In this document: positions 4,081-63,468 of the stretch, one piece after another | Layout: every line of letters begins with the position of its first letter | Position numbering within the stretch: position 1 is the stretch's first letter | Source of the DNA: Ranitomeya imitator | Lineage: Eukaryota | Reading direction: 5' to 3' | DNA length: 64,000 nt | Assembly (NCBI RefSeq): GCF_032444005.1 | Contig: NC_091286.1 | Location: 545,724,001-545,788,000 of the forward strand | Program-made: the position numbers and the translations under genes | Notes under the pieces: model-generated | What the model saw: only the letters and a program-made list of their open reading frames with translations | Databases searched by the model: none | What the model was told of the DNA's origin: nothing

Positions 4081-5162
4081 ACAGCACTCCTCTCACAGTC
4101 CCCATAATGTGAAAACCATAAAGGTTACTCTCACCTGATCCTGATTCCCTGTCCACAGCAGCCTGGATCTCTTCTTGTCAAGTGTATAAACAGTGGGCGG
4201 CACAGGCGATGCCGTGCATGTAGTGATGTCACCTTAATGGTGTGTTACAGCGTGCCAACTACACTATTGAAGTTCTCTTATAAGGATTTATTAGGGTTTT
4301 GTGTTTTTATGAAAATAAATTTTCATCACTATATGTTGAAAAATTCAACAACTTTCTTTTATCCTGTGCATCTAAAATTGCTCATGATTTCTCAGATTTG
4401 TGTTTGATGTCAGTGGATAAGAACATTCTCCTTTACATTCAGCAGCTAATAATCGCATGCAAACAGTTCTGCTCCCAGGTAAGAAATGGAGACACTATAT
4501 CCAGTATAGGCAATGGTCTGCAAGCTAAGCAGCCTAGACTGAGACATTAGCAAAGATTTCACATATTTCTTCTGCTGACCTATATAGCATATCTTAAAAT
4601 GTATTTACATAATTGTCATTACTCACATTTCCTGCTCTACAACACTATTAAAGCTGATGCAAACAAACACATTAATGATTAAGGTTATATGAATATGCAA
4701 TATAGAAAACACTGAAAGCACATCCCAATAAAGAACAGCAGCACCACAATGAACGACAACAAAAAAGGCAATTTATTCATTGTGTGCAACATTTCAACAC
4801 AAGAAGTTCTTTGCAGGCTTAAAAAAGTTCTCTTTGGGGTTAAAACATCTTACATGGTGGAAAAACAACACTATTTTCGGATTTCAATTGGATAACTACA
4901 CTAGTTCCTTTTTGAAATACATTCTTGAGTTCCGATACCAGGGCATTAAATACAGTCATCTTATATTTCTATCTACTATCCACTATATGCACAATCTCTC
5001 TTCTGTATAGACGCTTTTATACAGGGGTGCACATAGGAATCATGGAGTCTCAGAGAGAGAATTCATCTTGTACAAAAAAAAAATTACAAAATTTGGTGCA
5101 GTAGGAGGGGTCACGCCATGTAGGCGCTGTCCCAAAATGATATATGTGCCTACCAACATTGA

Positions 5163-5529
5163 GGCTATGTGCACACGTTCAGGAATGTCTGCAGAATTTT
5201 CCTGAGCAAAACCGGACTCCCAGCGCAGGAAATCCGCTCACGCTTTTCTCACATTTTTTGCGCTTTTTTTGCGTTTTTTCCCGGACCTCCCGAATGCAAT
5301 AATATAGCGGCAAAACCACGAAAATCCGCAAAATTAATGAACATGCTGCGCTTTTTTCCGTGATGTGTTTTTTTCTAAAAAAAAAAAAACGCAGCATGTG
5401 CACAAAAATTGCGGAATGCATTAAAAATTATGTATGCTTAATGTAAGTGTTTTTAAGCATTTTTGCAGCGGAAAACTGCTGGAAAAATGCGGAAAAAACG
5501 CAAAAAATCCTGAACGTGTGCACATAGCC
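5163..5529. mobile_element. Harbinger/Tourist-type MITE
   Basis: TIR GGCTATGTGCACACGTTCAGGA at both ends; flanks TGA and TTA; non-coding. Confidence 0.85.
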
Positions 5530-5634
5530 TTAAGCACAGGAAGAGGGACATACAGTATATGGCTGCATGTACATATAAATAGGTCCTCTCTCCTCCTGTA
5601 CCAGTTGTGACTTGTATTGTTCAAGATTATTGTA

Positions 5635-36400: not shown

Positions 36401-39400
36401 CATAATAAATTGGGCTGGCTGTAGGCAATTTAAAATTGGTTCCAGGGGAACCCGGGCAGCAGTAGACAGGTCAGTGGAGGCCTAGTGGAAGGAGGGACCG
36501 CAGACAGGCTTCGAAGCCCTAACATAATAAATTGGGCTAGCTGTAGGCAATTTAAAATTGGTTCCAGGGGAACACGGGCAGCAGTGGCCTGGTCAGTGTA
36601 GTAGTAGTGGAAAAACGGGCCGCAGACAGGCTTCGAAGGCCTAACATAACAAAAATTGGGATGTAGGCAATTTACAATTGGTTCCAGGGGAACACGGGCA
36701 GCAGTAGACAGGTCAGTGGAGGCCTAGTGGAAGGAGGGACCGCAGACAGGCTTCGAAGCCCTAACATAATAAATTGGGCTGGCTGTAGGTAATTTAAAAT
36801 TGGTTCCAGGGGAACCCGGGCAGCAGTAGACAGGTCAGTGGAGGCCTAGTGGAAGGAGGGACCGCAGACAGGCTTCAAAGCCCTAACATAATAAATTGGG
36901 CTGGCTGTAGGCAATTTAAAATTGGTTCCAGGGGAACCCGGGCAGCAGTAGACAGGTCAGTGGAGGCCTAGTAGAAGGAGGGACCGCAGACAGGCTTCGA
37001 AGCCCTAACATAATAAATTGGCCTGGCTGTAGGCAATTTACAATTGGTTCCAGGGGAACACGGGCGGCAGTAGACAGGTCAGTGGAGGCCTAGTGGAAGG
37101 AGGGACCGCAGACAGGCTTCGAAGCCCTAACATAATAAATTGGGCTGGCTGTAGGCAATTTAAAATTGGTTCCAGGGGAACCCGGGCAGCAGTAGACAGG
37201 TCAGTGGAGGCCTAGTGGAAGGAGGGACCGCAGACAGGCTTCGAAGCCCTAACATAATAAATTGGGCTGGCTGTAGGCAATTTAAAATTGGTTCCAGGGG
37301 AACCCGGGCAGCAGTAGACAGGTCAGTGGAGGCCTAGTGGAAGGAGGGACCGCAGACAGGCTTCGAAGCCCTAACATAATAAATTGGGCTGGCTGTAGGC
37401 AATTTAAAATTGGTTCCAGGGGAACCCGGGCAGCAGTAGACAGGTCAGTGGAGGCCTAGTAGAAGGAGGGACCGCAGACAGGCTTCGAAGCCCTAACATA
37501 ATAAATTGGCCTGGCTGTAGGCAATTTACAATTGGTTCCAGGGGAACACGGGCGGCAGTAGACAGGTCAGTGGAGGCCTAGTGGAAGGAGGGACCGCAGA
37601 CAGGCTTCGAAGCCCTAACATAATAAATTGGGCTGGCTGTAGGCAATTTAAAATTGGTTCCAGGGGAACCCGGGCAGCAGTAGACAGGTCAGTGGAGGCC
37701 TAGTGGAAGGAGGGACCGCAGACAGGCTTCGAAGCCCTAACATAATAAATTGGGCTGGCTGTAGGCAATTTAAAATTGGTTCCAGGGGAACCCGGGCAGC
37801 AGTAGACAGGTCAGTGGAGGCCTAGTGGAAGGAGGGACCGCAGACAGGCTTCGAAGCCCTAACATAATAAATTGGCCTGGCTGTAGGCAATTTACAATTG
37901 GTTCCAGGGGAACACGGGCGGCAGTAGACAGGTCAGTGGAGGCCTAGTGGAAGGAGGGACCGCAGACAGGCTTCGAAGCCCTAACATAATAAATTGGGCT
38001 GGCTGTAGGCAATTTAAAATTGGTTCCAGGGGAACCCGGGCAGCAGTAGACAGGTCAGTGGAGGCCTAGTGGAAGGAGGGACCGCAGACAGGCTTCGAAG
38101 CCCTAACATAATAAATTGGGCTGGCTGTAGGCAATTTAAAATTGGTTCCAGGGGAACACGGGCAGCAGTGGCCTGGTCAGTGTAGTAGTAGTGGAAAAAC
38201 GGGCCGCAGACAGGCTTCGAAGGCCTAACATAACAAAAATTGGGATGTAGGCAATTTACAATTGGTTCCAGGGGAACACGGGCAGCAGTAGACAGGTCAG
38301 TGGAGGCCTAGTGGAAGGAGGGACCGCAGACAGGCTTCGAAGCCCTAACATAATAAATTGGGCTGACTGTAGGTAATTTAAAATTGGTTCCAGGGGAACC
38401 CGGGCAGCAGTAGACAGGTCAGTGGAGGCCTAGTGGAAGGAGGGACCGCAGACAGGCTTCAAAGCCCTAACATAATAAATTGGGCTGGCTGTAGGCAATT
38501 TAAAATTGGTTCCAGGGGAACCCGGGCAGCAGTAGACAGGTCAGTGGAGGCCTAGTAGAAGGAGGGACCGCAGACAGGCTTCGAAGCCCTAACATAATAA
38601 ATTGGCCTGGCTGTAGGCAATTTACAATTGGTTCCAGGGGAACACGGGCGGCAGTAGACAGGTCAGTGGAGGCCTAGTGGAAGGAGGGACCGCAGACAGG
38701 CTTCGAAGCCCTAACATAATAAATTGGGCTGGCTGTAGGCAATTTAAAATTGGTTCCAGGGGAACCCGGGCAGCAGTAGACAGGTCAGTGGAGGCCTAGT
38801 GGAAGGAGGGACCGCAGACAGGCTTCGAAGCCCTAACATAATAAATTGGGCTGGCTGTAGGCAATTTAAAATTGGTTCCAGGGGAACCCGGGCAGCAGTA
38901 GACAGGTCAGTGGAGGCCTAGTGGAAGGAGGGACCGCAGACAGGCTTCGAAGCCCTAACATAATAAATTGGGCTGGCTGTAGGCAATTTAAAATTGGTTC
39001 CAGGGGAACCCGGGCAGCAGTAGACAGGTCAGTGGAGGCCTAGTAGAAGGAGGGACCGCAGACAGGCTTCGAAGCCCTAACATAATAAATTGGCCTGGCT
39101 GTAGGCAATTTACAATTGGTTCCAGGGGAACACGGGCGGCAGTAGACAGGTCAGTGGAGGCCTAGTGGAAGGAGGGACCGCAGACAGGCTTCGAAGCCCT
39201 AACATAATAAATTGGGCTGGCTGTAGGCAATTTAAAATTGGTTCCAGGGGAACCAGGGCAGCAGTAGACAGGTCAGTGGAGGCCTAGTGGAAGGAGGGAC
39301 CGCAGACAGGCTTCGAAGCCCTAACATAATAAATTGGGCTGGCTGTAGGCAATTTAAAATTGGTTCCAGGGGAACCCGGGCAGCAGTAGACAGGTCAGTG

Positions 39401-40789
39401 GAGGCCTAGTGGAAGGAGGGACCGCAGACAGGCTTCGAAGCCCTAACATAATAAATTGGCCTGGCTGAAGGCAATTTACAATTGGTTCCAGGGGAACACG
39501 GGCGGCAGTAGACAGGTCAGTGGAGGCCTAGTGGAAGGAGGGACCGCAGACAGGCTTCGAAGCCCTAACATAATAAATTGGGCTGGCTGTAGGCAATTTA
39601 AAATTGGTTCCAGGGGAACCCGGGCAGCAGTAGACAGGTCAGTGGAGGCCTAGTGGAAGGAGGGACCGCAGACAGGCTTCGAAGCCCTAACATAATAAAT
39701 TGGGCTGGCTGTAGGCAATTTAAAATTGGTTCCAGGGGAACACGGGCAGCAGTGGCCTGGTCAGTGTAGTAGTAGTGGAAAAACGGGCCGCAGACAGGCT
39801 TCGAAGGCCTAACATAACAAAAATTGGGATGTAGGCAATTTACAGTTGGTTCCAGGGGAACACGGGCAGCAGTAGACAGGTCAGTGGAGGCCTAGTGGAA
39901 GGAGGGACCGCAGACAGGCTTCGAAGCCCTAACATAATAAATTGGCCTGGCTGTAGGCAATTTACAATTGGTTCCAGGGGAACACGGGCGGCAGTAGACA
40001 GGTCAGTGGAGGCCTAGTGGAAGGAGGGACCGCAGACAGGCTTCGAAGCCCTAACATAATAAATTGGGCTGGCTGTAGGCAATTTAAAATTGGTTCCAGG
40101 GGAACCCGGGCAGCAGTAGACAGGTCAGTGGAGGCCTAGTGGAAGGAGGGTCCGCAAACAGGCTTCGAAGCCCTAACATAATAAATTGGGCTGGCTGTAG
40201 GCAATTTAAAATTGGTTCCAGGGGAACACGGGCGGCAGTAGACAGGTCAGTGGAGGCCTAGTGGAAGGAAGGACCGCAGACAGGCTTCAAAGCCCTAACA
40301 TAATAAATTGGGCTGGCTGTAGGCATTTTAAAATTGGTTCCAGGGGAACCCGGGCAGCAGTAGACAGGTCAGTGGAGGCCTAGTGGAAGGAGGGACCGCA
40401 GACAGGCTTCGAAGCCCTAACATAATAAATTGGGCTGGCTGTAGGCAATTTAAAATTGGCTCCAGGGGAACACGGGCAGCAGTGGCCTGGTCAGTGTAGT
40501 AGTAGTGGAAAAACGGGCCGCAGACAGGCTTCGAAGGCCTAACATAACAAAAATTGGGATGTAGGCAATTTACAATTGGTTCCAGGGGAACCTGGGCAGC
40601 AGTAGACAGGTCAGTGGAGGCCTAGTGGAAGGAGGGACCGCAGACAGGCTTCGAAGCCCTAACATAATAAATTGGGCTGGCTGTAGGCAATTTAAAATTG
40701 GTTCCAGGGGAACCCGGGCAGCAGTAGACAGGTCAGTGGAGGCCTAGTGGAAGGAGTGACCGCAGACAGGCTTCGAAGGCCTAACATAA
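24496..40789. repeat. 122-bp satellite array (~133 monomers) with higher-order repeat structure marked by a 120-bp variant monomer
   Basis: Period 122 (TCGAAG-equivalent positions at 24571, 24693, 24815); 12 variant monomers with spacings of n x 122 + 120. Confidence 0.97.
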
Positions 40790-41251
40790 GAAAAATGTCA
40801 ATACAATGGTATTGACAGTGCCAGGCATTGAAGGATGTCAGCGCATAGACTAAACATTGGTGGAGCTGTGAGAGAAAATTTTGCAAGTGGTAGAGCACTG
40901 TTTGACCTGGGGGGGGGGACTGTCTTGTGGCCGGCGGTACAGGCCCAGGGCCCCTCATATTACAACGGTGTGTCTGACGTTGGGTGCGCACCACCACCGC
41001 CAGACACTTTATTGTACTATGAGGGACCTAGTGGCAGTGCCGTCGACCAAAAGCGGGCACACCCACCTCTTCAGACAAACAGTACTCTCACGGGTGCTGG
41101 CGCCAAGTGGCGATACCACGGCCCCGTGTGGGGACTTTGGCCATCTAGGGAGGTGTTAACATGTCGGATGCTGGACAATCAGGTGCTGCAAATTACAAGA
41201 TTGGAAAAGTCGTTCAGAATAGTCCACAGGCAAGACCTTTACATAGGAAAG

Positions 41252-46896: not shown

Positions 46897-48085
46897 AGAA
46901 ATGGCGCTTTTCGCGTCATTGAAACGCGACTTTGGCGCGAAAGTCGCGTACCGCATGGCCGACCCCGCACAGGGGTCGGATCGGGTTTCATGAAACCCGA
47001 CTTTGTCAAAAGTCGGCTACTTTTGAAAATGTTCGACCCGTTTCGCTCAACCCTAGTTAGTACAATACAATTGCTTGCTGCCAAATGATTGAGTTATCTT
47101 GTCAGCTCTGCTGCATCTGAATGCATATAGATTATTTCACTCCATTTCCTGATCTATGAGCAATATTGTGTGCACTTAGCTGAATATTTCATCATACAAA
47201 AGTCGCATATTATTTACTACTCAAAGACTTCACTGTGTTTGTACTAAATATCCTCTCCTTTGACACTTAGGGACTAAGCCAATTTTGCCAGTTTTGAGGA
47301 GCAGAATATTTTATTAATTTTTCCTTTTACGAATCATAATTTTCATATTTCTTGCTTCACATTTTCTCCTAAAAGTACACAGACAGCTGTCTGTCCTAAC
47401 ACCAGTAAATATTGCCAGATGGCCATGGGGACTTTCAGTAGACCTTGGGCTTTTTGACTATGATAGGTATAAGCTTCAATCACGTTAAAAAGTTTTGTGT
47501 TAAAACGGAGGTTCCACTCACTTTATCCATCTTTATGCAGTGATAAGGGTTGTGGCATTTGCAGGGTTAACCTGTTGAGGTTCTTCTGATTTGCTCCATT
47601 ACGGTAGGATTGTACATGTGTATTACTTTTAAATGCCAGGCTGCGTTTTCAGGTGCTTAAAGGGGTATTCTTTTGTTATGAAATTGGTATAGTTAGATGA
47701 ACAGCGTCACAATAAGACAGTTTGCAATTGATTTGCTTTTATATCTGCTTTCATTCTCTTGCTTTAAGAGCTTTTATCTTATGTAGCATACAGCTTATTG
47801 AAAAGGAGCTCTGCCACCAAAACCTGGCCAAGGATGCACAGAAGTTACATTCCAGGAGAGGAGTTAACTCCTGAGATACCAGCCACCTCTCTCCAGGCGA
47901 CTAATTTCTATACAGCAGTTAGCTCCTCACCTTCCCCTTGACTGTCAGCTACTAACCTGTTATCAATCTTGAGTAATCACAAACTCCCATCCTGGCCCTC
48001 ACCATCACCAGTTTTCACTTATGCAATTTTTGCTTATTCAAAGGCACTGTTATCTCTAGATGCAAATTCAGAGCAAGCACTGTTA

Positions 48086-48447
48086 GGCTATATTCACACT
48101 TTGCGGATTTTGCTGCGGATCCGCAGCGGATTTGACCGCTGCGGATCCGCAGCAGTTTCCCATGAGTTTACATTTCAATGTAAACCTATGGGAAACAAAA
48201 AACGCTGTGCACATGCTGCAGAAAAATCCGCGCGGAAACGCTGCGGATTACATTCCGCAGCATGTCACTTCTTTTCTGCGGATTTTCACCTGCTCCAATA
48301 GAAAACTGCAGATGAAAATCCGCAGAAGAAAACGCAGTAAAAACCGCGATAAATCCGCAGTAAAAACCGCGATGGGTTTTCACTGCGGATTTTGCAATTC
48401 TGCTGCGGAAAAATCCGCAGTGGAATCTGCAGAGTGTGAACATAGCC
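48086..48447. mobile_element. Harbinger-type MITE
   Basis: TIRs GGCTAT(A/G)TTCACACT; TTA on both sides (48083-48085, 48448-48450). Confidence 0.88.
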
Positions 48448-48808
48448 TTAATGTGTTTCAGCAGTTTGATGAAGCTATTGCACCAGAACTGGCACTCACA
48501 GAGGAGTACTCCCCAGTAATAAGGAAGTAAGGAGACTGGAGACCAGTGTGCTGCTCAAGGCACAACTTGAAAATAAGCCTTTAAAGAGGTTATACCCGTT
48601 CAGAAAAACCCAACACACATCCTTGGGTGCTGTTGATGTGACATCAGCATGGCAGCCAATTCCAGACACTGGAAGCAGCAGCAGAGACTCGGCGCTTGAC
48701 TTGGGAAGGTTTAAGGGAAGGTTTAAGCCCAGTTTTTTTTTATAACAGTCATCGCCTGGGAGCCAACATTTTCTGCTTTCTACACATTTAATTAGAAAAG
48801 GAACGTAC

Positions 48809-50310: not shown

Positions 50311-50462
50311 AAAACACAGTATATAGTTAATAGTGTTCTGACACCGTGCGTCGGCTGCACTGAGAGTCATGATGCCAGGAGGAAATTAACTTCGTTCCTC
50401 ACTGCAGCCTAGGGGGCGGCGCCGTACTGTTTCAGTCACAGCAGCTGTAACTGCGCCTCTTA

Positions 50463-50764
50463 GGGTATGTGCACACGTTGCGGATAACATTGCGGACTTT
50501 TCCGTTCGGATTCTGAAAAATCCGCAGGTAAAAACACCCTGCGTTTTACCTGCGGATTCCCAGCGGATTTACTGCATATTTTGTGCAGATTTCGCCTGTG
50601 TTTTTACACCTGCGGAATTGATATGCTGCGAAAAAATACAACGCAGCGTTTCCGCGCTGTATTTTCCGCAGCATGTGCACTGCGGATTTTGTCTTCCATA
50701 GGTTTACATGGTACTGTAAACCTGATGGAAATCCGCTGCGGATCCACAACGTGTACACATAGCC
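50463..50764. mobile_element. Harbinger-type MITE (first of a tandem pair)
   Basis: GGGTATGTGCACACG ... CGTGTACACATAGCC; TTA on the left, TAA on the right. Confidence 0.82.
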
Positions 50765-50767
50765 TAA

Positions 50768-51404
50768 GGCTATGTGCACACGTAGGAAGGGTCCCTGCGG
50801 GTTCTCCCGCAGCGGATTTGATAAATCTGCAGGGCAAAACCGCTGTGGTTATCCCTGCAGATTTATCACGGTTTGTCTTGCGGTTTCCGCTGCGGGATTA
50901 CTCCTACTATTGATGCTGCATATGCAGCAATATGCAGCATCAATAGTAATGTTAAAAATAATTAAAAAAATGGTTATATACTCACCCTCTGACATCCCGA
51001 TCTCCTCGGCGCTGCACGTGGCGGTCCGGTTCCAAAGATGCTGTGCGAGAAGGACCTTCGTGACGTCACGGTCATGTGACCGCGACGTCATCACAGGCCC
51101 TGCTCGCATAGCAACCCTGCCACCGGACGGCCGCATGCAGTGCTGAGAGGTGAGTATATCATGATTTTTTATTTTAATTCCCCATTCGGGAAGTAAGCGG
51201 ATCAATGCATTCCTATGTGTGCAGAATCGCCGCGATTCTGCACAAAAGAAGTGACATGCTGTGGATTGTAAACCGCGGCGTTCCCGCGCGTTTTTTTCTG
51301 CAGCATGTGCACAGCGTTTTCGGTTTCCCATAGGTTTACATTGAACTGTAGACTCATGGGAAACTGCTGTGGATCCGCAGCTGCAGAAACGTGTGCACAT
51401 AGCC
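50768..51404. mobile_element. Harbinger-type MITE (second of a tandem pair)
   Basis: GGCTATGTGCACACG ... CGTGTGCACATAGCC; TAA on the left, TTA on the right. Confidence 0.82.
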
Positions 51405-51564
51405 TTAAAGCGCCACTCCAGCGGTGAAATAACAAAAAATGCTGCAGTGATGCTTTAAATGTGATGCAGCTCATGGCTTACCCAGCTGATAAGTATAATA
51501 TGCCCCCTACCTCCCCTTCCCAGAGAACAACTATTACATGTGATGGAGTGCATATAGTCTCTTA

Positions 51565-51939: not shown

Positions 51940-53765
51940 TTAACAAAACCATATAATAATCAGCCCCTCAGTGTTGTTGCCCCTCACCCACCTCGGACCT
52001 CACAATACCCTTATCTTCTCACATTCACCCCCCCCAGTGCCCTGTCCCCCTCCCCCACCTAAGCCCCCACAACACCCCCATCCTCTCACATTTACCCCCC
52101 AGTGACTGACATGCCTATCAATTTAATGCATTTTATCCCCAGAACAGCACTTACCAATGACGTTTGCAGCAGGACCAGGAAGTATCTGAGTGAAATGCAG
52201 GTGGGCACTAGGACCCAGCGTGCCTGCCCTGAGCCAATCCCAGCGTGCACACGGAGGGAACTTGGGAAGAAACCTTTAGCCTGGGAGGAGGTCGGTCAGC
52301 ACAATACAGTGCAGGAGGGAGATTTGCAACTGGCCACTGTGCTGCCAGCGTGCAGAATCTCCGTCAGGCAAGAGAGCAGGCATTTTGCTGCTCTCCTCCT
52401 GTGCTGTATTGTGCCTCATCACGGAAGTGGCAGTGCCGGCTCCCAGTGGGCCCCTTCATGTGACAGGGCCCGGGGCGATGGCCCCCTCTGCCCCCCCAGT
52501 AGCTACGCTACTGGAGAGGCCTGTAATTGACATCATAGGTAGACCACAACTATGAGAGTCAAAATGAGACAACAAATCCAGAAAATCACCTTGTTTGATT
52601 TGGCAAGATTTATTTTGCAAATTATGGTAGAAAATAAGTATTTGGTCACCTAAAAACATGCACGATTTCTAGCTCTCACAGACCTGTAACTTCTCCTTGA
52701 AGAGACTCCTCTGTCCTCCTCTCATTACCTGTAGTAATGGCGCCTGTTTGAACTTGGTATCAGTATAAAAGCTACCTGTCCACAACCTCAAACAGTCACA
52801 CTCCAAACTCCACTTGGGTGAAGACCAAAGAGCTGTCGAAGGACGCAAGAAACGAAATTGTAGCCCTGCACCAGGCTGGGAAGACTGAATCTGCAATAGG
52901 CAAGCATCTTGGTGTGATGAAATCACCTGTGGGAGCAATAATAAGAAAATGGAAGACATACAAGGCCACTGATAATCTCCCTCGATCTGGGGCTCCACGC
53001 AGGATCTCACCCGGTGGGGTCAAAATGATCACAAGAACGGTGAGCAAAAATCACAGAACCACACGGGGGGACCTAGTGAATGACCTGCATAGAGCTGGGA
53101 CCACTGTAACAAAGGCTACCATCAGTAACACACTACGTCCCAGTGACTCAGATCCTGCAGTGCCAGACGTGTCCCACTGCTTAAGCCAGTACATGTGCGG
53201 GCCCGTCTGAAGTTTGCTAGAGAGCATTCGGATTATCATATGAAGGTCCTGGAGTGGACTAGCCAGTCTCCAGATCTCAACCCCATAGAGAACATTTAGA
53301 GGGAGTTGAAAGTCCATGTTGGCCAGCGACAGGCCCAAAACAGAAGAGATCTACATGGAGGAATGGACCAACATACCACTAACAGTGTGTGCCAACTTTG
53401 TGAAGACTTACAGAAAACATTTGACCCCTGTCATTGCCAACAAAGGATATATAATAAAATATTGAGATGAACTTTTGTTAATGACCAACTACTTATTTTC
53501 TACCATAATTTGCTAAATAAAACTTGCCAAATCAGACAAGGTGATTTTCTGTATTTGTTCTCTCATTTTGACTCTCATAGTTGTGGTCTAACGATGATGT
53601 CAATTACAGGCCTCTCTCATCTTTTTTAGTGGGAGAACTTGCACAATTGGTGTCTGACTAAATACTTTTTTCCCCACTATATATAATTACATATCTTACA
53701 TGGACGCCATAGAAATGAATTGTCCAATCATGTACAAGGCAGAAATCAAAATATATCATACTCAC

Positions 53766-53861
53766 AGAACAATGCATGCGGTACACATGTTTTTCAGCAC
53801 AGCAAGTTGAGCTGCATTTATAGAAATCTACCAACAGGAGGACAATGGATAAAATGATCAT
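53766..53861 (-). CDS. tm4sf18: TM4SF18 coding exon 2
   Basis: MIILSIVLLLVDFYKCSSTCCAEKHVYRMHCS; TACAG acceptor, GTGAGT donor; 96 nt in phase 0/0. Confidence 0.88.
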
Positions 53862-54471
53862 CTGTAATGAGAATAAACCAGGCATAAAAAAATATTTTAA
53901 AGAATATTTTTATTATTAAAGACATAGTTTTGTGCATAGTTTTAAGATTGAGAGGAATCTCAAGTCCTTTGTGTTCAGCCTAGAGCCTAACTTGTTGATC
54001 CAGAGGAAGGCAGATGCTAATTACCTCATACTAGGGGAAAAAATGTTTCCCAACTCCACATCTGCGGATTAACATCCCATCACACAATCTAGTGCTCAAG
54101 GACCTCCTTGAACCTGTGGCAGAGAGTTCCATATTCTCACTGCTCTTAGGCCATGTTCACACAGTGCGTTTTTTACCGCGGAACCGCGGCGGTTTTGCCG
54201 CTGCGGTTCCGCAGCTGTTTTCCATGCAGGGTACAGTACACTGTACCCTATGGAAAACAGGACACACTGTGCACATGGTCCGGAAATTGTTAAAAAAAAG
54301 ACGCGCTGAATAGCTCCCGGAAAAAAGAAGGAGCATGTCAATTCTTTTTCCGGAGCCGCAGCGGTTCTGCACCCATAGACCTCCATTGTGAGGTCAAAAT
54401 CGCAGTAAAACACGCAGATCAAAAATATATCTGCGTGTTTTACTGCGGTTTGATGTGCAGAACCGCTGCTG

Positions 54472-54523
54472 CAGGAAGTTCGGGGAAGCGGGCGGAAGTG
54501 CGTGGGCGGAAGTCCGTGGGCGG
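54472..54523 (+). promoter_or_regulatory. Candidate TATA-less promoter of the MADF gene
   Basis: Three ETS-like [CG][CA]GGAAGT motifs (54472, 54492, 54506) interleaved with three GGGCGG boxes, 40-90 nt upstream of the ATG at 54563. Confidence 0.55.
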
Positions 54524-54562
54524 CGTGTGTGGTCCTGACTGTATCCCGAAGAGACTGTCACC

Positions 54563-57500
54563 ATGGAGGCATACCGTTGCATGGGGATCGATGTCGGGCG
54601 TCTGATTGATTTGGTAAGTCTGTGTGTCCGTCCCCATGCGACGATATGCCTCTATTGTGCTAAGTCGCCGTATCGGACTACTACTCCCATCCGGTATTTA
54701 GGATGGGAGAGTTGTCCCTGTGTCCGGCGACTTAGCACAATACTAAAGTTCACACCAAACACAAACACACAATACACAAACATGACACACAGTACAGTAC
54801 ATACAACACATAACATAGAGTATATACTCACCATACACCACACTTGTAGGCGAAGCCCTCGATCCTCAATGAAAAAATCCCAAAATAATAAAGCAAATCC
54901 ATACTCCCTGTCCGCAGAATCCATAACCGAGTGTCCCACGCCGATCTCCTGCTCTCCGGTGATACACTGCCAGGAGCGAAGCTCCTAGCAGTGTATCGCG
55001 TACTGTCCCGGAGCTCAATGGCGCCGGCGTCTCGGTTAACGGCAGTACAGCTGCGTTGAACTTTCCCACGCAGCACTGCCGTTAAGCGAGAGTACCGGGG
55101 TCAATGACCGCCGGTAAACTCGCTCGCGCATGCGCAGTGACACACCGACAGGAACTATGGCTCCTGTCAGTGTGTTGCTGCAGCCGTGGAGAGCAGACAC
55201 ATCTCTGGATGTGTCTGTTCTCCATGGAAGATCTTCGTGGGACCCTCGATGGATTTCTGCGGACAGGGCCAGGGAGTATGAATTTGTTTTTTTGTTTTGC
55301 CTTTTTTTCAGGTCGAGGGTCTTCAGGATGGATTGAGCGTGCAATAAAAGAATTGTCAAAAAGTGTGTGTCTTTATTTCATTAAAATATTTTTTCTAGTG
55401 TTTGTGTTTTTTTTTTTAACCCTTTCATTGGCTTAATAATGGATAGGCGTCTCATTGACGCCTCTCCATTATTAACCGGGCTTAATGCCACCTTACAATA
55501 GCAAGGTGGCATTAACCCCTCATTACCCCATATCCCACCGCTACACGGGAGTGGGAAGAGAGGGGCTAAGTGCCGGAATTGGCGCATCTTTTTGATGCGC
55601 CTTTTCCGGGGCGGCTGCGGGCTTATATTTGTAGCCAGGGGGGGGCAAATATCCATGGCCCCTTTCCTAGGCTATGAATATAAGCCCACGGCTGTCTGCG
55701 TAGCCTTTCTGGCCTAAAAATATAGGGGGACCCCAACACGTTTTTTTTCGGGGCCCCCTATATTTTAGTGCCAGAAAGGCTACGCAGACAGCCGTGGGCT
55801 TATATTCATAGCCTGGGAACAGCCATGGGTATTTTAACCCCTTCCCGGGCGTCAAATATTGGCCCACAGCTGTCTGCTTAGCCTTTCTGGCCTAAAAATA
55901 TAGGGGGACCCCAACACGTTTTTTTTTTTCGGGTCACCCTATTTTTTAGTGCCAGAAAGGCTACGCAGACAGCTGTGGGTTAATATTCATAGCCTGGGAA
56001 CAGCCATGGGTATTTTAACCCCTTCCCGGGCGTCAAATATTGGCCCACAGCTGTCTGCTTAGCCTTTCTGGCCTAAAAAAATAGGGGGACCCCAACACAT
56101 TTTTTTTTTTTAGGGGGGTCCACATATATTATAGTAAACCTTAGGATTAATAATTGATCGGCGTCTTATTGACGCCTCGCCATTACTAACCGTGCTTAAT
56201 GCCACCTTACAATAGCTTTAGGGGTAGGGTTAGGATCCCTGTAGGGTTAGGGTTAGGATCCCTTTAGGGTTAGGGTTAGGATCCCTTTAGGGTTAGGGTT
56301 AGGATCCCTGTAGGGTTAGGGTTAGGGTTAGGGTTAGGATACCTGTAGGGTTAGNNNNNNNNNNNNNNNNNNNNNNNNNNNNNNNNNNNNNNNNNNNNNN
56401 NNNNNNNNNNNNNNNNNNNNNNNNNNNNNNNNNNNNNNNNNNNNNNNNNNNNNNNNNNNNNNNNNNNNNNNNNNNNNNNNNNNNNNNNNNNNNGGTTANN
56501 NNNNNNNNNNNNNNNNNNNNNNNNNNNNNNNNNNNNNNNNNNNNNNNNNNNNNNNNNNNNNNNNNNNNNNNNNNNNNNNNNNNNNNNNNNNNNNNNNNNN
56601 NNNNNNNNNNNNNNNNNNNNNNNNNNNNNNNNNNNNNNNNNNNNNNNNNNNNNNNNNNNNNNNNNNNNNNNNNNNNNNNNNNNNNGGTTAGGGTTAGTAT
56701 CCCTGTAGGGTTAGGGTTAGGATCCCTGTAGGGTTAGGGTTAGGGTTAGGGTTAGGATCCCTGTAGGGTTAGGGTTAGGGTTAGGATCCCTGTAGGGTTA
56801 GGGTTAGGGTTAGGATCCCTGTAGGGTTAGGGTTAGGATCCCTGTAGGGTTAGGGTTAGGGTTAGGGTTAGGATACCTGTAGGGTTAGGGTTAGGGTTAG
56901 TATCCCTGTAGGGTTAGGGTTAGGATCCCTGTAGGGTTAGGGTTAGGGTTAGGGTTAGGATCCCTGTAGGGTTAGGGTTAGGGTTAGGATCCCTGTAGGG
57001 TTAGGGTTAGGGTTAGGATCCCTGTAGGGTTAGGGTTAGGATCCCTGTAGGGTTAGGGTTAGGGTTAGGATCCCTGTAGGGTTAGGGTTAGGATCCCTGT
57101 AGGGTTAGGGTTAGGGTTAGGGTTAGGATCCCTGTAGGGTTAGGGTTAGGATCCCTGTAGGGTTAGGGTTAGGGTTAGGATACCTGTAGGGTTAGGGTTA
57201 GGATACCTGTAGGGTTAGGGTTAGGATCCCTGTAGGGTTAGGATCCCTTTTGTGGTTGTGTTATGTTTAGGATCCCTTTTGGGGTAGAGTGCTTAGGGTT
57301 ATGAGCCCTAACCCTACCCTAACTATTTCACTTTATAGTGTGTTTTTTAATGAATGTTGTTGATTGTCGCACGAACCACTCAGGATTGACGGCGACAGAG
57401 CTAGTGGTAAAACAACTGCACACAAGCGTTTTTATTGGTGTTTGTGTTTTCAGTTTGTGCTTGTGTTCAGTTATTAGGGGTTACTTTGAAATATTTCCAG

Positions 57501-58703
57501 CAATTGTGTAACATTACTTGGTCGCGCTATAGATTATGAGATGACACTATTGTATTTATTGTAGGTTCGGGATTATCCGGCCTTGTGGGACCCAGCCGAT
57601 GAATCCTACAAGGATAAATATTTCCGGGAACTAGCCTGGACCAAAATTGTACGAGACCTTATCCCAGATTGGGACAAGTATCCAGGGAGTACACAGCAGC
57701 AAATTGGTAATTTTAATTAAATTTATTTAGTAAACCTTGAGTATATTAAAAATATAATTTGTTTAGATCTCACAAAAAATGTTGTATTTTGTAACCTTTT
57801 TTTGGTAGATAACGATGTGAGGAAACGGTGGCGCTCAATCAGAGACCGTTTCACGAAGTTCCTGAACGAATGTTCTAAGAGTGGCTCTTCGCCGAGCAAA
57901 AGTAAATTTCCATTTAGCGAAGAGCTGCAGTTTCTTGTGTCCAGTAGGACATTGAGAAAGTAAGTTAAAATCCACTCCACATGATTATTTAAATATAATA
58001 TGTTGTGCGAAAAATTGATGTTTTTTTTTTCTCCAACAGGACGGAAGGAAACATGTCGGTAGCTGATTTGGAGGACAGCGACAAAGAGGATGGAGCAGGC
58101 AGTTCCTCTGGAGTGGGAGGGACCATCTCTACCTCCACTCCCACAGCTTCTGCTGAATCAGCATCCACTTCAGCAGCTGCTGCATCAACATCTAGTTCAG
58201 CAGCTGCTGAAGCATCTGATTCCGCAGAAGCTGTGAGAGTGGAGAAGAGAGCTGTCTATCCGGTGGCAGCAGAGAAAAAAAAAAAAAAAACAAAGAAAAA
58301 CCAAGATGACCAAACTGTCCAAATCGCTTGCGACACGTTAGATCTATTAAAAAAATCTAGTTCTGATGACCACTGCGACTCCTTCGCAATAACTGTGGCA
58401 AGAAAAACACGCTCCCTGCCACCGGATAGACAATCTCTTTTCATGTCCATGGTCCAGATGTCCCTCACTGCTCTGGAGGACCCTGCTCCGATATCTCCAT
58501 ACAATGAAGTTCTGATGGGGGTGTTGGGACTTTTCAGGCCCCGACACCGAACACCGGAAACACAAGCTACCAGACCCCAGTATTTGGCCCACAGCCAAGT
58601 TACTTCTGGAGATAGAGGAAGTTCGCAGCATATGGGGGGAGCATCATATCAATCAGAGGGATCAAATTTCCTCTATTCTCCAGAATATACTTTTCTGAAT
58701 TGA
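54563..58703 (+). CDS. Harbinger Myb/SANT-like (MADF) DNA-binding protein, 335 aa; exons 54563-54613, 57565-57706, 57809-57959, 58040-58703
   Basis: All introns are GT-AG with matching phases (0, 1, 2). The spliced product reads MEAYRCMGIDVGRLIDLVRDYPALWD...AW...VRKRWRSIRDRF (MADF signature) with a BESS-like DSFAITVARKTRSLPP; 1008 nt with no stop or frameshift. Confidence 0.9.
55670..56100. repeat. Tandem ~180-bp foldback units in MADF intron 1
   Basis: Perfect 44-bp arms at 55670-55713 and 55770-55813, repeated downstream. Confidence 0.8.
56218..57322 (+). repeat. Telomere-like array: (TTAGGG)1-4 alternating with TTAGGATCCCTGTAGGG; short CCCTAA inversion at 57307-57322
   Basis: Directly visible; interrupted by N blocks at 56355-56493 and 56499-56685, so the true length is unknown. 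Confidence 0.92.
56355..56685. other. Undetermined bases (assembly gap or masking) within the telomere-like array
   Basis: N runs of 139 and 187 nt separated by GGTTA. Confidence 0.95.
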
Positions 58704-59210
58704 ACATGGGCAAAAATTTTCAGTGGCACCGAGTTTTTTTTGGTTTGTTTTTTAGCTCCAGTTGCCGGTTGGCTTTGAAAGGGGCTTTTTTTTGTTTTTT
58801 CTAATTGAAAAATCTTTTGTAAATATTGCAAAGAATTTGTGTTCTTTTAAATATATTACATTTCAAACAGACTATTCTCTTCTTTATTACAATGCGGTCA
58901 AGGCCGCTATCCTGGGTTTATGGGCTATCAATTAGTGGTTTATGTGTTGATGTGTTAACAATTGTATACGTCATATTGCTATTATTTTCATAAAACACCC
59001 AATTTTTTGTAGCCAAAAAAAAAAAAAAAAATTAATTACACCCAAATAGATTTTTTATTGATATTACAATCAATTATTTAACACAGTTTTTTTGGTAACA
59101 TGAAACAAAAAAATTTTTTTTCAAACTTTTGTGTTGGTTGCTGGCGTTTCTCATTCTTCGGGATGTTGTCAAAACTGTTATCAGCGATGTCGGCAACATT
59201 TCTGGGGGGG

Positions 59211-61523
59211 TCAGTGTAGATGCATCCTTCTCTGCTGGTCAGGCTGCTCAACACCAGCACAGGAGTATTGCCAGTGCACGGCACCTTCAGGACTCATAAA
59301 GTAGTCAGTGAAGGATTCTCTCACACGCACACCAGAGTTGGACGGCCTACCCAGACCCCCGTTGTCAACTGGATTAAATACTGGCTGCTGGTACTCCACA
59401 TCAACGTCAGTGTTGTATTCACGAGCATAGTTGTGGAGTACACAGCAAGCCTTTATCACAGCATCAACGGTGTCTGTGTCCAACTGAATGGCAGTGTGAA
59501 AGATCCTCCACTGACTAGTCATGATCCCAAAGGTGCATTCCACATATCTGCGTGCACGACTCAGCCGATAATTAAAAATCCTCCGTCGGGCATCCAGTCC
59601 CCTTCGTGGGTATGGGCGCAGCAGGGTTGTCGTTAAGGGAAACGCCTCATCCGATACCATCACGAACGGCACTGGATGTGTGGAACCCGGCAAAGGTCGT
59701 GGGGCTGGGAGCGTGCCGCCATCTCGAAGAATTTGCATCCCAATCTGTGACGTTCGCAACACCCGAGAATCCCCAGTACTACCATAGGCACCAACGTCAA
59801 TGGCAACAAATTTGTAATGGGCATCAGCCACCGCCATCAGGACCACTGAAAAATACTTCTTATAATTAAAGAAGCGTGATCCTGATCGTGGTGGCTGCTG
59901 AACCCGAACATGTTTACCATCGACTGCACCTATGCAGTTTGGGAAATTGGCCACAGACTGAAAGCCTGCTGCAACCTGCAGCCAAGTCTCCTCGGTTGGG
60001 GAAGGCATCACCATGGGCTGCAACTTCTGCCAGATGACGGTACATGTACACCTCACAATGTTAGAGATGGTAGATTTACCAACTCTAAATTGGAGGTGCA
60101 GGGATGTATAGCTCTCTCCTGTGGCCAAAAATCTGAAAAGAAACAAAAAAGAAAATTAGAAATGTCACACAAAAAGGTAATTACAACATGTCACAAGTTA
60201 AGGCCGCTATTATATGCGTCCAGCACCATTCAATAATGCTGGCATTAACACCCAGCACAACACAAAGGGTGTAAAAAACATTAATAAAAGGCCTGATGGG
60301 ACTTGTGCACACACGCATGCGAGATATGACCAAATGTTGCATGGTAATCCCCGGACCTGCTGCATGCACTCCGTTGTGGAGCGTGCGGCTCCATGTATTG
60401 GTATGTGGGTGCAGACTCCGCTCCAGAGTGCAGGCGGCAGAGCCGGGGTTTACCATGCAACACTCGCCCGTATCTCACGTGTGTGTGTGTATGTGTGCCC
60501 CCTGTCCAAAAAGAGGACTGGGTGGGTTTAATCACACATACTGGACACACACACAAGTAAAATACAGACCTAACAACATTCCCCCCAAAAATTGTTACTT
60601 ACCGCAAGGTGATGAGCAGCCTTTCTTCAGCAGAGATGGACTTCCTCATCACTGTGTCTTGCAGTGTTAAATGGGGTGCCAGGATGGTAAGCAGTCTGTC
60701 AAAGGCAATAATTGGTAACCGACAAAACGATATAAATTTTTCAGGATATCTGAAAATTGCAAAAGAACAACAAAAAAGGGTTACTTCACAAGTATTGCTA
60801 GCCAAAAAAGGTAAATTAGTCATTCTATATATTTCTACTTACCTCCTCAAATCATTGTACAGCACATGAAAGTGCCCCTTCTCAGTTCGGTCTTCTACAA
60901 GCGGGTGCACCCACAATCGTTTCTGCACACGTCTTCTCGGCCGCCGCTAAATAGAAAAATAAAAAAATATTTCGTAAACACAACAATTAGAAAAATATAT
61001 CAAACATGCAAGGAAAACAATGTCGATTATGTAAGGATACGTGTCCACATTCAGGAAGGCCCACCCCATTCTAGTACGCAATGATGCCAGATGTGTTCAT
61101 TGTACAAATCCAGCATCATCACACCCGACGTATAGGGTCCTCTTTTATTCATTGCGGAGCCGCAGTTTCACAACAAGGAACACAGACATGCTGTGATCAT
61201 AAAAGACGCGCAGCATGTCCGGAGTCGCAGGGCTGACGGATGACACACAGTGGACACGTGATTTCATGACATCACCTCCAGTATGCTGACATGTGGACGC
61301 TGCATGTTTGGCGCTGCGGCCACACGCAGCGCCAAACATACAACGTTTCCAGAATGTGGACAAGTACCCATAACCCAATATATAAAACAAACAGACATCT
61401 GCTTACCTGACGTGCATGTCGATTCAGAATTAGAAGCATCAACCCCAGGATCGCAATCCGGTGTGGCGTGCGGAGCTGGATCCGTGGGCTGTCATCTGGA
61501 CGACGCTCTGCACGTCCACTCAT
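59211..61523 (-). CDS. Harbinger DDE transposase (HARBI1/DDE_Tnp_4-like), 429 aa; exons 61523-61407, 60946-60843, 60749-60603, 60132-59211
   Basis: GT-AG introns with phases 0, 2, 2; N-terminal RRPRRRVQKRLWVHP...LYNDLRRYPEKF; catalytic AVDGKH, VSDEAFP, RRYVECTFG; 1290 nt with no stop. Confidence 0.92.
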
Positions 61524-61665
61524 TTTGATGTGTAAGTTCCAAAATGGAGGATGGAAGAAGAAAAGGGTTGGACAAGGAAATGACATCATTTTTTTTTTTT
61601 CTTCCCCCCACTGCAGTAAACTTTATTTCTGTCAAACACAGACAATCTGCAGACAAAACTGCATC

Positions 61666-61737
61666 AAAAAACGCACTAAAAAACGCACTAAAAAACGCAC
61701 CAAAAAAACGCACCAAAAACGCACCAAAAAACGCACC
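61666..61737. repeat. Six tandem subterminal AAAAA(A)CGCAC[TC] motifs
   Basis: The exact reverse complement AGTGCGTTTTTT sits just inside the left TIR (54163-54174). Confidence 0.85.
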
Positions 61738-62620
61738 TGCGTTTTCTGCAGAGACCTGCGGTTTCAGTCAGGAAAAAAAAAGGATGGAAATCCTGAACGT
61801 GTGAACATACCCTTACAGTAAAGAATCACCATTAAACCTTCTTTCCTCTAGAACAGGGATGTCAAACTCAAATACACAGAGGGCCAAAATTAAAAGCTGG
61901 GACAAAATTGTGGGCCAACCTTGATATTTATTAAAAAGATGTTTACACTTGAGGGCGTTATTCCTTATCATCGAATATAACAATGAGTTTTTTTTAATGT
62001 GGAAACAAACTTAAAGGGGTTGTCTCACGAACAAAGTACATTTTAGTTAATAGATCTTAGAATAAAATATTGGAATAATATGTTATGTAAGAGCAGTTAA
62101 AAGGATATGGCCCAATGGCCTAATTTAAAAAAGTTATCACAAAGGATAGAAAAACTTATAATAAAAAGTATGATGCAAACAAAAGTGCCCCCAAACACAG
62201 TATGATACACCCACAGTGAATTCCTCCATGCGCACGGGGTGAAACTGAGTCACTTCTCATGGGCAAGCAGTGAGACAGGGTAGTCAGGAGGTCCGAGGTC
62301 ACTTACCAGGAGGGCTCGAAGTACAGAGGGATAAGTCAAAGGCATGGTCAGGAAACAGTCCAGGGTCAAATGCTAGGAGGGTCCATCAAAACCAGGGGGC
62401 ACAACAAACATATAGTCAGAAGCCTATTCCAGGGTCAGACAACTAAAGTCAGAGTATCAAAAGCAGTAGGGAGAATCCACATGAGAAGTCACAAAAAACC
62501 CTATGTCTGGCACCAGGGTCAGAGGAAAGAGATACAGCGCTAAGCAAACACATCCAGCTTAGGCAAAGCTACAACTGACATTGCACAGTCCGTGAAAAAG
62601 GTATGCGGGTGGCACTTGCC

Positions 62621-62897: not shown

Positions 62898-63066
62898 GCC
62901 GGCAAGTGCTTGTTACCTGGTAGCAGTCATATGTGTAAAGTCCTAATCTTATAGAAAACTTCCCGTCTTGCTCACTAGTCTTCCCTATTTTCTAATTCCC
63001 ACATAGCTTCACATTATTAAGTGTACTCAGCAGTAAATGCAATAAGACATATAACATGATACTTAC

Positions 63067-63243
63067 CAAAATGCCCCCAAAACAGATACCTTGGAAATAC
63101 CAGACATAATTTGTGATCTGATTGTTGGCAGCATACGTGTTCTCCCCATTTGGAAAGTATAGCAGGATATTCACAACAATGCTCCATACGGCCAGAGGAA
63201 TAACAGCAAGAATGGAATATTCTGAGCAATTCTTAAGAAACAT
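63067..63243 (-). CDS. tm4sf18: TM4SF18 coding exon 1
   Basis: MFLKNCSEYSILAVIPLAVWSIVVNILLYFPNGENTYAANNQITNYVWYFQGICFGGIL, then GTAAGT; 177 nt. The L6-family signature NILLYFPNG and the WSI.VN / TNYVWYF.GICF pattern are those I recognise from TM4SF18. Confidence 0.92.
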
Positions 63244-63468
63244 CTTTGAATAGCAACGAACTAATAGACAGAGCGGTCGGGCTTGTATAACATCACTATG
63301 GTTTCTGCAAGTGGTTGAGTAAGTGGACAAAGCAGCAGCTGAACGAGCAAGTTGCTGGGAGATGAACCAGCACACACAATCGCTGACTCACAAACAGTAC
63401 AGCAGACACATAAGTGACGGTAGTATTTATGGGAGATCTGGACTGAAGAAGAAACCGCAACTACTTAA

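Follow-up and report, generated by a model that had tools for sequence, protein, structure and literature searches.

A structurally complete, possibly active two-gene Harbinger element in Ranitomeya imitator

The 64,000-nucleotide stretch of Ranitomeya imitator DNA analysed here, hereafter called the window, contains at positions 54149-61812 a Harbinger element of 7,664 bp, which sequence analysis found to be structurally complete and to carry two genes. We put at about 85 % the probability that it is a single, complete copy from an autonomous two-gene PIF/Harbinger family of this frog, one that was amplified recently. It is of an ordinary kind, a further member of PIF/Harbinger, and possibly active. 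The genes had been described in the initial annotation as hidden, which is true of the ORF track of that scan but not of RefSeq, where both genes at the locus are already modelled with the same CDS limits. The element is an insertion in intron 1 of a host gene of the TM4SF/L6 type, the RefSeq model of which spans the element (first coding exon checked on the right side, 63243).

Ends, genes and long intron of the element

The termini and the repeated motif next to them are as follows.

54146-54148, no strand: left target-site duplication (TSD) TTA, read directly, the same as 61813-61815
54149-54162, plus strand: left terminal inverted repeat (TIR) GGCCATGTTCACAC, 12/14 against the reverse-complemented right end
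54164-54173, minus strand: single subterminal copy of AAAAACGCAC, an exact match, inverted relative to the six right-end copies
61655-61737, plus strand: right subterminal tandem repeats, AAAAACGCAC(C) six times, from repeat and motif search
61799-61812, minus strand: right TIR, GGGTATGTTCACAC in minus-strand reading, 14 nt, 12/14 against the left end
61813-61815, no strand: right TSD TTA, read directly

The 3-bp TSD of TWA type (TTA) and the short TIRs (14 nt) are those of PIF/Harbinger elements. The 17-nt pattern of TSD plus TIR occurs 11 times in the window, mostly as inverted pairs, against 0.06 expected. The right terminus is backed by contigs of presumed RNA origin which exit at 61813/61815 into several different flanks, and other copies in such contigs have TTA or TAA as the terminal TSD. 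The observed/expected ratio of CpG is higher within the element (0.59-1.05) than in the flanks (0.16-0.31), which argues that the element is young. No Rfam match at the gathering score was obtained for 53500-62500.

Exact matches to AAAAACGCAC occur once on the minus strand (54164), six times on the plus strand (61667-61736) and nowhere else; with one mismatch allowed there were 15 matches against 3.4 expected. The motif is a candidate binding site for the MADF protein. Across 54149-54620 the CpG observed/expected ratio is 1.05, against 0.16 in the left flank, and the promoter of the MADF gene presumably lies in 54178-54562. This region includes a G+C-rich palindrome (54178-54212) and a repeat of GGGCGGAAGTCCGT (2.4 times, 54490-54523); the palindromes were taken from a bacterial-type promoter scan, the promoter calls of which are irrelevant here. 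The two genes are convergent and are composed of the following parts.

54178-54562, plus strand: 5' region of the MADF gene, CpG-rich, presumed promoter
54563-54613, plus strand: MADF exon 1, 51 nt, 17 codons, with the start codon and the first four MADF-domain residues
54614-57564, plus strand: MADF intron 1, GT at 54614, AG at 57564
57565-57706, plus strand: MADF exon 2, MADF profile positions 5-36
57809-57959, plus strand: MADF exon 3, MADF profile positions 44-84
58040-58703, plus strand: MADF exon 4 including the stop codon, from exon reconstruction
58704-59210, no strand: spacer between the convergent 3' ends, 507 bp (508 bp stop to stop)
59211-60132, minus strand: transposase exon 4, DDE_Tnp_4 catalytic domain and C-terminus
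60603-60749, minus strand: transposase exon 3, part of the helix-turn-helix region
60843-60946, minus strand: transposase exon 2, from exon reconstruction
61407-61589, minus strand: coding part of transposase exon 1 (61523-61407 in the 429-aa version)

Each gene has four exons, and all introns are GT-AG. The MADF gene has a CDS of 1,008 nt encoding 335 aa (0 internal stops) and the transposase gene a CDS of 1,290 nt encoding 429 aa. The initial annotation of a complete two-gene Harbinger was thereby borne out: the 335-aa and 429-aa frames are open and spliceable through three GT-AG introns per gene, the 14-bp TIRs (12/14) lie between TTA at 54146-54148 and at 61813-61815, the DDE triad described as intact is present, and the 51-nt MADF exon 1, placed about 2.95 kb from exon 2, is separated from it by an intron of 2,951 nt as assembled, 326 N included.

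The MADF domain (PF10545) was detected with Pfam in exons 2 and 3, and the second gene thus encodes a protein of the Myb/SANT/MADF class, as in other PIF/Harbinger elements. The full profile (1-84) corresponds to residues 14-107 of the RefSeq protein P0121, which is 99.4 % identical to the MADF protein of the window, so that the domain begins with four residues encoded in exon 1. The RefSeq CDS at the locus begins exactly at 54563 (span 4,141 bp, 335 aa), and the exon 1 peptide is also found in other copies and in the Dendrobates tinctorius protein P0132. Exon 4, 100 % identical to P0121 along 220 aa, encodes an Ala/Ser-rich stretch, a run of lysines (from the A16 tract at 58275-58290) and a C-terminal part that is conserved. 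A BESS-like motif is apparent by eye in the C-terminal part of the protein; it had no Pfam match and is not claimed. The protein differs from the family majority at 3 positions, all outside the MADF domain.

In the transposase, DDE_Tnp_4 (PF13359) was found with E=7.8e-32 over the full profile (1-158). Residues D194, D244 and E321 are the majority residues among 120 homologues, and from family knowledge rather than structure we take them to be the catalytic triad; a sequence search of the PDB gave no solved-structure relative. The protein has 451 aa when read from the upstream in-frame ATG at 61589, which is the RefSeq start, and 429 aa from 61523. The 5' UTR contains a short upstream ORF and reaches at least 61702, presumed-RNA contigs extending to 61664-61702. 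An AATAAA for the transposase mRNA is located in the spacer (59059, minus strand), and contigs end near 58995 for the plus-strand gene and near 59045 for the minus-strand gene.

The length of MADF intron 1 includes the 326 N as an estimate. The intron carries hairpin/MITE-like inserts (54653-54742 and 54870-55310), a composite block of repeats that includes a 181-bp tandem (55430-56217) and a telomere-like (TTAGGG)n/GGATCCCTGTAG satellite (56218-57322). The assembly gap (56355-56493 and 56499-56685) is inside this satellite, 1,741 nt past exon 1 and 879 nt ahead of exon 2, and therefore no reading frame depends on it. The gap thus falls in a tandem array that family copies have in common, where mis-joins classically occur, and the join at 56355-56685 might fuse a left part, with the left end and exon 1, to a right part from a different copy; TTA on both sides is weak evidence of one insertion, since the family always targets TWA. 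Such a chimera is nevertheless very unlikely. The same satellite flanks the gap on both sides in the same orientation, and the sequence of left end, exon 1, long intron, exons 2-4 and transposase is the normal family order at other loci. The host-gene model also runs across the element, with the right-hand coding exon at 63243 as the part checked, but it is derived from the same assembly and is not independent support. As far as this is testable, the earlier treatment of 54149 and 61812 as ends of one element stands.

Ten ORFs around the left end and in intron 1, considered as parts of a third gene, had no credible Pfam match. RefSeq has only two element genes at all six loci where the identical transposase is encoded, in keeping with a family of two genes only, although a third gene of short exons is still conceivable.

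Family copies, transcripts and splicing

The RefSeq protein P0133 (451 aa), 100 % identical to the transposase of the window, has six coding loci, spread over four chromosomes, in assembly GCA_032444005.1. The gene measures 2,379 bp at each of them, and five of these loci also have a convergent MADF gene, 508 bp away (stop to stop). Sibling copies have a MADF gene of variable span, 3.4-8.2 kb. Identity of the transposase at six loci indicates very recent transposition by the same architecture, long intron included. Clustering at 90 % grouped 43 and 21 transposase sequences and 33 MADF sequences, and many of the full-length members share 98.6-100 % identity with the transposase of the window. 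Several identical or near-identical full-length copies are thus present at different loci, as is expected of an active element. The copy is consequently one of many rather than unique. RefSeq annotates about a hundred family proteins that are nearly identical, so the two genes of a single transposon family account for about a hundred 'uncharacterized protein' genes of this frog. In a word search for insertion polymorphism with a 100-nt junction query, represented by only six sampled words, nearly all runs held 2 of these.

HARBI1 and NAIF1 are domesticated vertebrate Harbinger genes, single-copy and without TIRs or TSDs. A host gene pair of this type, rather than a transposon, would account for the introns and expression of the two genes and for their annotation as ordinary protein-coding genes. 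This explanation is exceedingly improbable, as TIRs and a TSD are present where a single-copy gene, syntenic across species and without either, would be expected, dozens of near-identical copies are found on different chromosomes (the identical protein at six loci), and presumed-RNA contigs pass from the right end into several different flanks.

Splicing was assessed from contigs, not reads, of four runs presumed to be RNA; the evidence is at the level of the family, near-identical siblings being indistinguishable. Contig and window sequences agree at 99.4-100 %. Of the six splice junctions predicted, five were confirmed to the base, namely 57706/57809 (4 of 4 runs) and 57959/58040 (three runs) in the MADF gene and 60132/60603, 60749/60843 and 60946/61407 (each in 4 of 4 runs) in the transposase gene, in the introns of which contig depth was near zero. 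The remaining junction of the six that had been predicted, MADF exon 1-exon 2, was not seen; the stretch compared with the contigs left out the satellite and the gap, and this splice lies outside that stretch. Contigs from runs X2 and X15 cross the acceptor at 57565 unspliced and retain the 3' part of intron 1. An in-frame TAG (57562-57564) directly precedes exon 2, so unspliced RNA across 57565 cannot encode the MADF domain, which is impossible without the exon 1-exon 2 splice. A search for transcript-derived protein fragments, with the first 64 residues of the MADF protein as query, gave no match. RefSeq does model the splice here and in several further copies, while in some others it has alternative first exons or a start at the exon-4 Met, giving proteins without the MADF domain.

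The copy might accordingly be structurally intact but dead or silenced, either because nested repeats and satellite block the splicing of exon 1 or because the family is silenced, and would then be a young fossil with open frames that reflect age alone. The intron 1-retaining contigs over the exon 2 acceptor in two runs, with no exon 1-exon 2 joint listed, are consistent with this, as are the contig depth of the MADF exons, 4-10 times below that of transposase exon 4, and the RefSeq models lacking the domain. The length of intron 1, filled with nested repeats, satellite and an unread gap, also speaks against the main reading. A dead or silenced copy is a serious possibility, though one that we doubt more than we believe. 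The exon 1-exon 2 splice is part of the RefSeq models at this locus and several copies, and the exon 1 peptide has been kept in P0132 of D. tinctorius although the exon-4 region is only 38 % identical. The identical transposase at six loci, moreover, points to very recent transposition, with MADF spans of 3.4-8.2 kb in all.

Mobility of the family

The element is a complete, very young copy from a family the genes of which are transcribed and, at five of the six predicted junctions, spliced. It is thus well placed as a candidate vertebrate transposon that is still mobile, and this copy, or its family, may still transpose. The initial annotation as a 'potentially active' autonomous element is reasonable, since the family is young and expressed; activity itself is what we infer. 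It is unlikely, though far from negligible, that the family is transposing now in R. imitator and that the telomere-like satellite of the MADF intron is also part of the mobile unit. If both were true, every transposition would start a new interstitial array of telomeric repeats, variable in length (sibling MADF spans 3.4-8.2 kb), and a naturally active vertebrate Harbinger would be usable without reconstruction.

By homology with Harbinger3_DR and rice Ping/Pong, on which every step of the following scheme is based, both convergent genes would be transcribed from opposite ends and spliced. The MADF protein would bind subterminal motifs, for which AAAAACGCAC is the candidate (six at the right, one inverted at the left), and would also bind the transposase and carry it to the nucleus and to the element ends. 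The DDE transposase (D194, D244, E321) would then cut at the 14-bp inverted repeats, and the element would be reinserted at TWA with duplication of 3 bp.

With its siblings and the spliced transcripts, the copy is a candidate that could be taken directly into a two-component transposition assay, and the family is a candidate for studying the persistence of DNA transposons in a very large, repeat-rich frog genome. The understanding of how Harbingers work is unchanged by the element.

Comparison with known systems

Four MITE pairs in the window have the same terminus class as the element. The local MITEs have a terminus of 14-25 nt in common with it and are 69-78 % identical to its left end along a stretch that does not exceed about 190 nt; they are its relatives rather than its derivatives. 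As only the terminus and a stretch of at most 78 % identity are shared, the proposal in the initial annotation that the element drives the local MITEs is plausible and nothing stronger. In rice, Ping/Pong-mPing (PIF/Tourist) combines an autonomous two-ORF element with MITEs that share its termini and a TWA target. Presumed-RNA contigs sharing just the last 41-48 nt of the right end of the frog element exist, and together with the local MITEs of the same TIR class they suggest a comparable autonomous/MITE relationship. Unlike mPing, no MITE in the window is a deletion derivative of the frog element (similarity to it does not exceed 78 % identity or a length of about 190 nt).

With HARBI1 and NAIF1 the element shares the two protein families, and Bufo gargarizans proteins annotated as HARBI1 are among the matches (about 56 % identity); unlike these genes, it is multi-copy and has TIRs and a TSD. 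Recent Harbinger bursts, with expressed transposase and Myb-like genes, have been described in the amphibian genome of Pleurodeles waltl (PMC5741667). The frog element is of a different lineage, with no more than two genes in RefSeq at any of the six loci, and its family has a modest copy number, tens of gene-bearing copies.

Harbinger3_DR of zebrafish, the vertebrate Harbinger studied best, was reconstructed from inactive copies and its activity demonstrated (Sinzelle et al. 2008, as summarised in PMC9710019); it has a DDE transposase, a Myb/SANT/MADF-type protein, short TIRs and a 3-bp TSD. Its Myb-like protein recognises a short motif in the subterminal region and is required for nuclear import of the transposase. 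All these parts recur in the frog element, together with a 10-nt subterminal motif that is repeated. Harbinger3_DR is active by demonstration, whereas the frog element is a candidate known from sequence and transcripts. The two also differ in that the genomic copy of the frog element is itself open, with identical transposase genes at six loci, and in that it has three introns per gene, and a long first MADF intron with nested repeats and a telomere-like satellite.

Structure and coding capacity of the element

The PIF/Harbinger element at 54149-61812 is 7,664 nt long, including 326 N. It is complete and young, and belongs to a Harbinger family that is annotated but has not been characterised. 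Its left end opens with GGCCATGTTCACAC and its right end, on the opposite strand, reads GGGTATGTTCACAC (12 of 14 nucleotides identical). TTA immediately flanks the element on the left and on the right. The terminal inverted repeats (TIRs) and the TTA target-site duplication (TSD) agree with the initial annotation. Every sequence-level feature that defines PIF/Harbinger is present in the element. No third gene was found: RefSeq has two element genes at each locus with the identical transposase where both are modelled, and ten ORFs from the left end, its surroundings and MADF intron 1 yielded no credible Pfam hit. Domesticated host genes were ruled out by the multiple copies, the TIRs and the TSD. 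The features of the locus are as follows.

54563-54613, 57565-57706, 57809-57959 and 58040-58703, plus strand: exons of the MADF gene, with GT-AG introns
56218-57322: telomere-like composite satellite of about 1.1 kb in MADF intron 1, with the gap 56355-56685 inside
56355-56493 and 56499-56685: N runs (assembly gap) inside this satellite
61523-61407, 60946-60843, 60749-60603 and 60132-59211, minus strand: exons of the transposase gene
62992-63375, minus strand: first coding exon of a TM4SF/L6-membrane-type host gene, ATG at 63243

Predicted splicing of the MADF gene gives an uninterrupted frame of 335 codons with a 51-nt first exon, the same figures as initially proposed. The MADF domain (Pfam) falls in exons 2 and 3. 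The 99.4 % identical R. imitator RefSeq protein P0121 carries the complete MADF profile (1-84) across residues 14-107, so that exon 1 contributes the first four residues of the domain. Compared with the family majority, the MADF protein of the window has three differing positions, none of them within the domain. Its lysine run is encoded by a pure A16 tract (58275-58290), a coding site prone to slippage and assembly error, and sibling proteins vary by whole lysines at this run.

The transposase frame has 429 codons, or 451 if started at the in-frame ATG at 61589. Exon 4 matches the whole Pfam profile DDE_Tnp_4 (E=7.8e-32), and D194, D244 and E321 are the majority residues among 120 homologues and lie in the motifs expected for Harbinger transposases. 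The initially proposed length of 429 residues was correct. The large introns contain one inverted-repeat insert apiece (61032-61372 and 60308-60489). In one, the arms are 26 nt long and separated by about 290 nt; the other is a near-palindrome whose arms measure 79 nt. The insert ends resemble the GG..TGT.CACA terminus of the Harbinger class, and the inserts may be old nested MITEs now carried along by the element.

The assembly gap begins 1,741 nt past MADF exon 1 and stops 879 nt ahead of exon 2, so neither gene relies on it for its frame. On both sides of the gap the satellite repeat, with units of (TTAGGG)2-4 plus GGATCCCTGTAG (23/29 nt), runs in one orientation, with five units before the gap and 20 after it, all on the plus strand. 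At sibling loci the parts occur in the same order as in the window, which supports the join across the gap indirectly. MADF gene spans among the siblings range from 3.4 to 8.2 kb, so the satellite array or its neighbours may vary among copies. Intron 1 also contains a composite repeat block (55430-56217; a 181-bp unit x2.4, with internal palindromes), bracketed by two direct copies of 70-73 nt with about 90 % identity.

Copies, age and host locus

The top protein matches for the element genes were RefSeq proteins of Ranitomeya imitator. The 451-amino-acid transposase P0133 is 100 % identical to that of the window over all 429 residues. GCA_032444005.1 encodes it at six places, distributed over four chromosomes; the gene spans 2,379 bp at each, and a convergent MADF gene lies 508 bp away at five of the six. 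The window genes have the same span and spacing. At one of these places a 335-amino-acid MADF CDS spans 4,141 bp, equal to 54563-58703, and the start of a TM4SF/L6 gene matches the first coding exon of that gene in the window (ATG 63243, minus strand), which identifies this place as the window itself. Both genes are consequently already modelled in RefSeq with the CDS limits initially predicted; the limits stood, and the genes are hidden from the ORF track only, not from RefSeq. The element sits in intron 1 of the TM4SF/L6 host gene, which has the same orientation as the transposase gene.

Clusters at 90 % contained 43 and 21 distinct transposase sequences and 33 MADF sequences, and included members from R. 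variabilis. For many of the full-length members, identity to the transposase of the window is 98.6-100 %. Of six sampled words from a 100-nt query across an insertion junction, nearly all runs searched contained two. The CpG observed/expected ratio is 0.59-1.05 in the element and 0.16-0.31 in the flanks, a pattern that would fit a recent insertion into a vertebrate genome with methylation. Amphibians are already known to have had recent, expressed bursts of Harbinger elements (PMC5741667). The literature searched contained no account of the family for Ranitomeya; its sole mention was a total for the repeat class in a genome paper since retracted (PMC8457190).

Transcription and splicing

Logan contigs from four sequencing runs of several studies (three guessed to be RNA, one of unknown kind) were aligned to 57330-61900 only, avoiding the satellite and the gap and covering five of the six splice junctions. 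The MADF junctions 57706/57809 (four runs) and 57959/58040 (three runs) and the transposase junctions 60132/60603, 60749/60843 and 60946/61407 (four runs each) were exact to the base, and the skipped segments were bounded by GT..AG on the correct strand. Contig depth was zero in both large transposase introns in three of the four runs, which argues for processed RNA rather than DNA as the source. Run X1 had additional RNA depth across 61155-61307. Long contig pieces differed from the window by 0-0.6 %, and the RNA is not assignable to the window copy because the siblings are near-identical. Five of the six predicted junctions were thus matched at the family level, the sixth (54613 to 57565) lying outside the aligned stretch.

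Two contigs (runs X2 and X15) cross the acceptor at 57565 unspliced from MADF intron 1. RNA of this kind is unable to encode the MADF domain, given the in-frame TAG at 57562-57564 and the lack of a Met in exon 2. Exon 1 is backed indirectly by RefSeq models at the window and other loci, by domain completeness and by peptide conservation: its peptide is kept in a Dendrobates tinctorius protein with just 38 % identity in the exon-4 region. A protein search found no transcript-derived protein fragments supporting exon 1.

At the right terminus, contigs match to 61813 or 61815 and then diverge into several different sequences, so other insertions have this same end position, either with TAA or with TTA. 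Further contigs match only the final 41-48 nt, which points to shorter relatives sharing this terminus. RNA contig depth is very high in the right flank (61816-61900), with a maximum of about 14,600 in run X1, and loose contig ends lie at 61854 and 61891-61895; a short part of this flank is thus from a repeat that is abundant and expressed.

Related repeats and proposed mechanism

The 17-nt TSD+TIR pattern matches at 11 sites in the window, where 0.06 would be expected, and the majority form inverted pairs 300-640 bp apart, i.e. MITEs of the terminus class of the element. Four such pairs, with TWA duplications, have GGCTATGTKCACAC termini:

5160-5532: MITE
48083-48450: MITE
50460-50767: MITE
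50765-51407: MITE, adjacent to the preceding one, with TAA in common

No partner was detected for a terminus of this type at 51562. Over 22 terminal nucleotides, the MITE at 5163-5529 agrees with the right end of the element at 21. Internally, the MITEs resemble the element along no more than about 190 nt of its left end (69-78 % identity), and they were accordingly rejected as its deletion derivatives. The proposal that the element drives the local MITEs is plausible at most: they are relatives of the same TIR class and might be cross-mobilised. A 16.3-kb satellite (24496-40793; 134 copies of 122-bp units, 94 % matches) lacks the terminal repeats of the element at its borders.

The motif AAAAACGCAC occurs as six exact tandem copies at 61667-61736 and once inverted, adjoining the left TIR; a window-wide search found no exact copy elsewhere. 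By analogy, it is a candidate binding motif for the MADF protein. On the model of Harbinger3_DR and rice Ping/Pong, applied by homology and following the summary in PMC9710019, the MADF protein would bind subterminal motifs and carry the transposase to the nucleus and to the element ends, where the DDE enzyme would cut at the TIRs and then reinsert the element at TWA.
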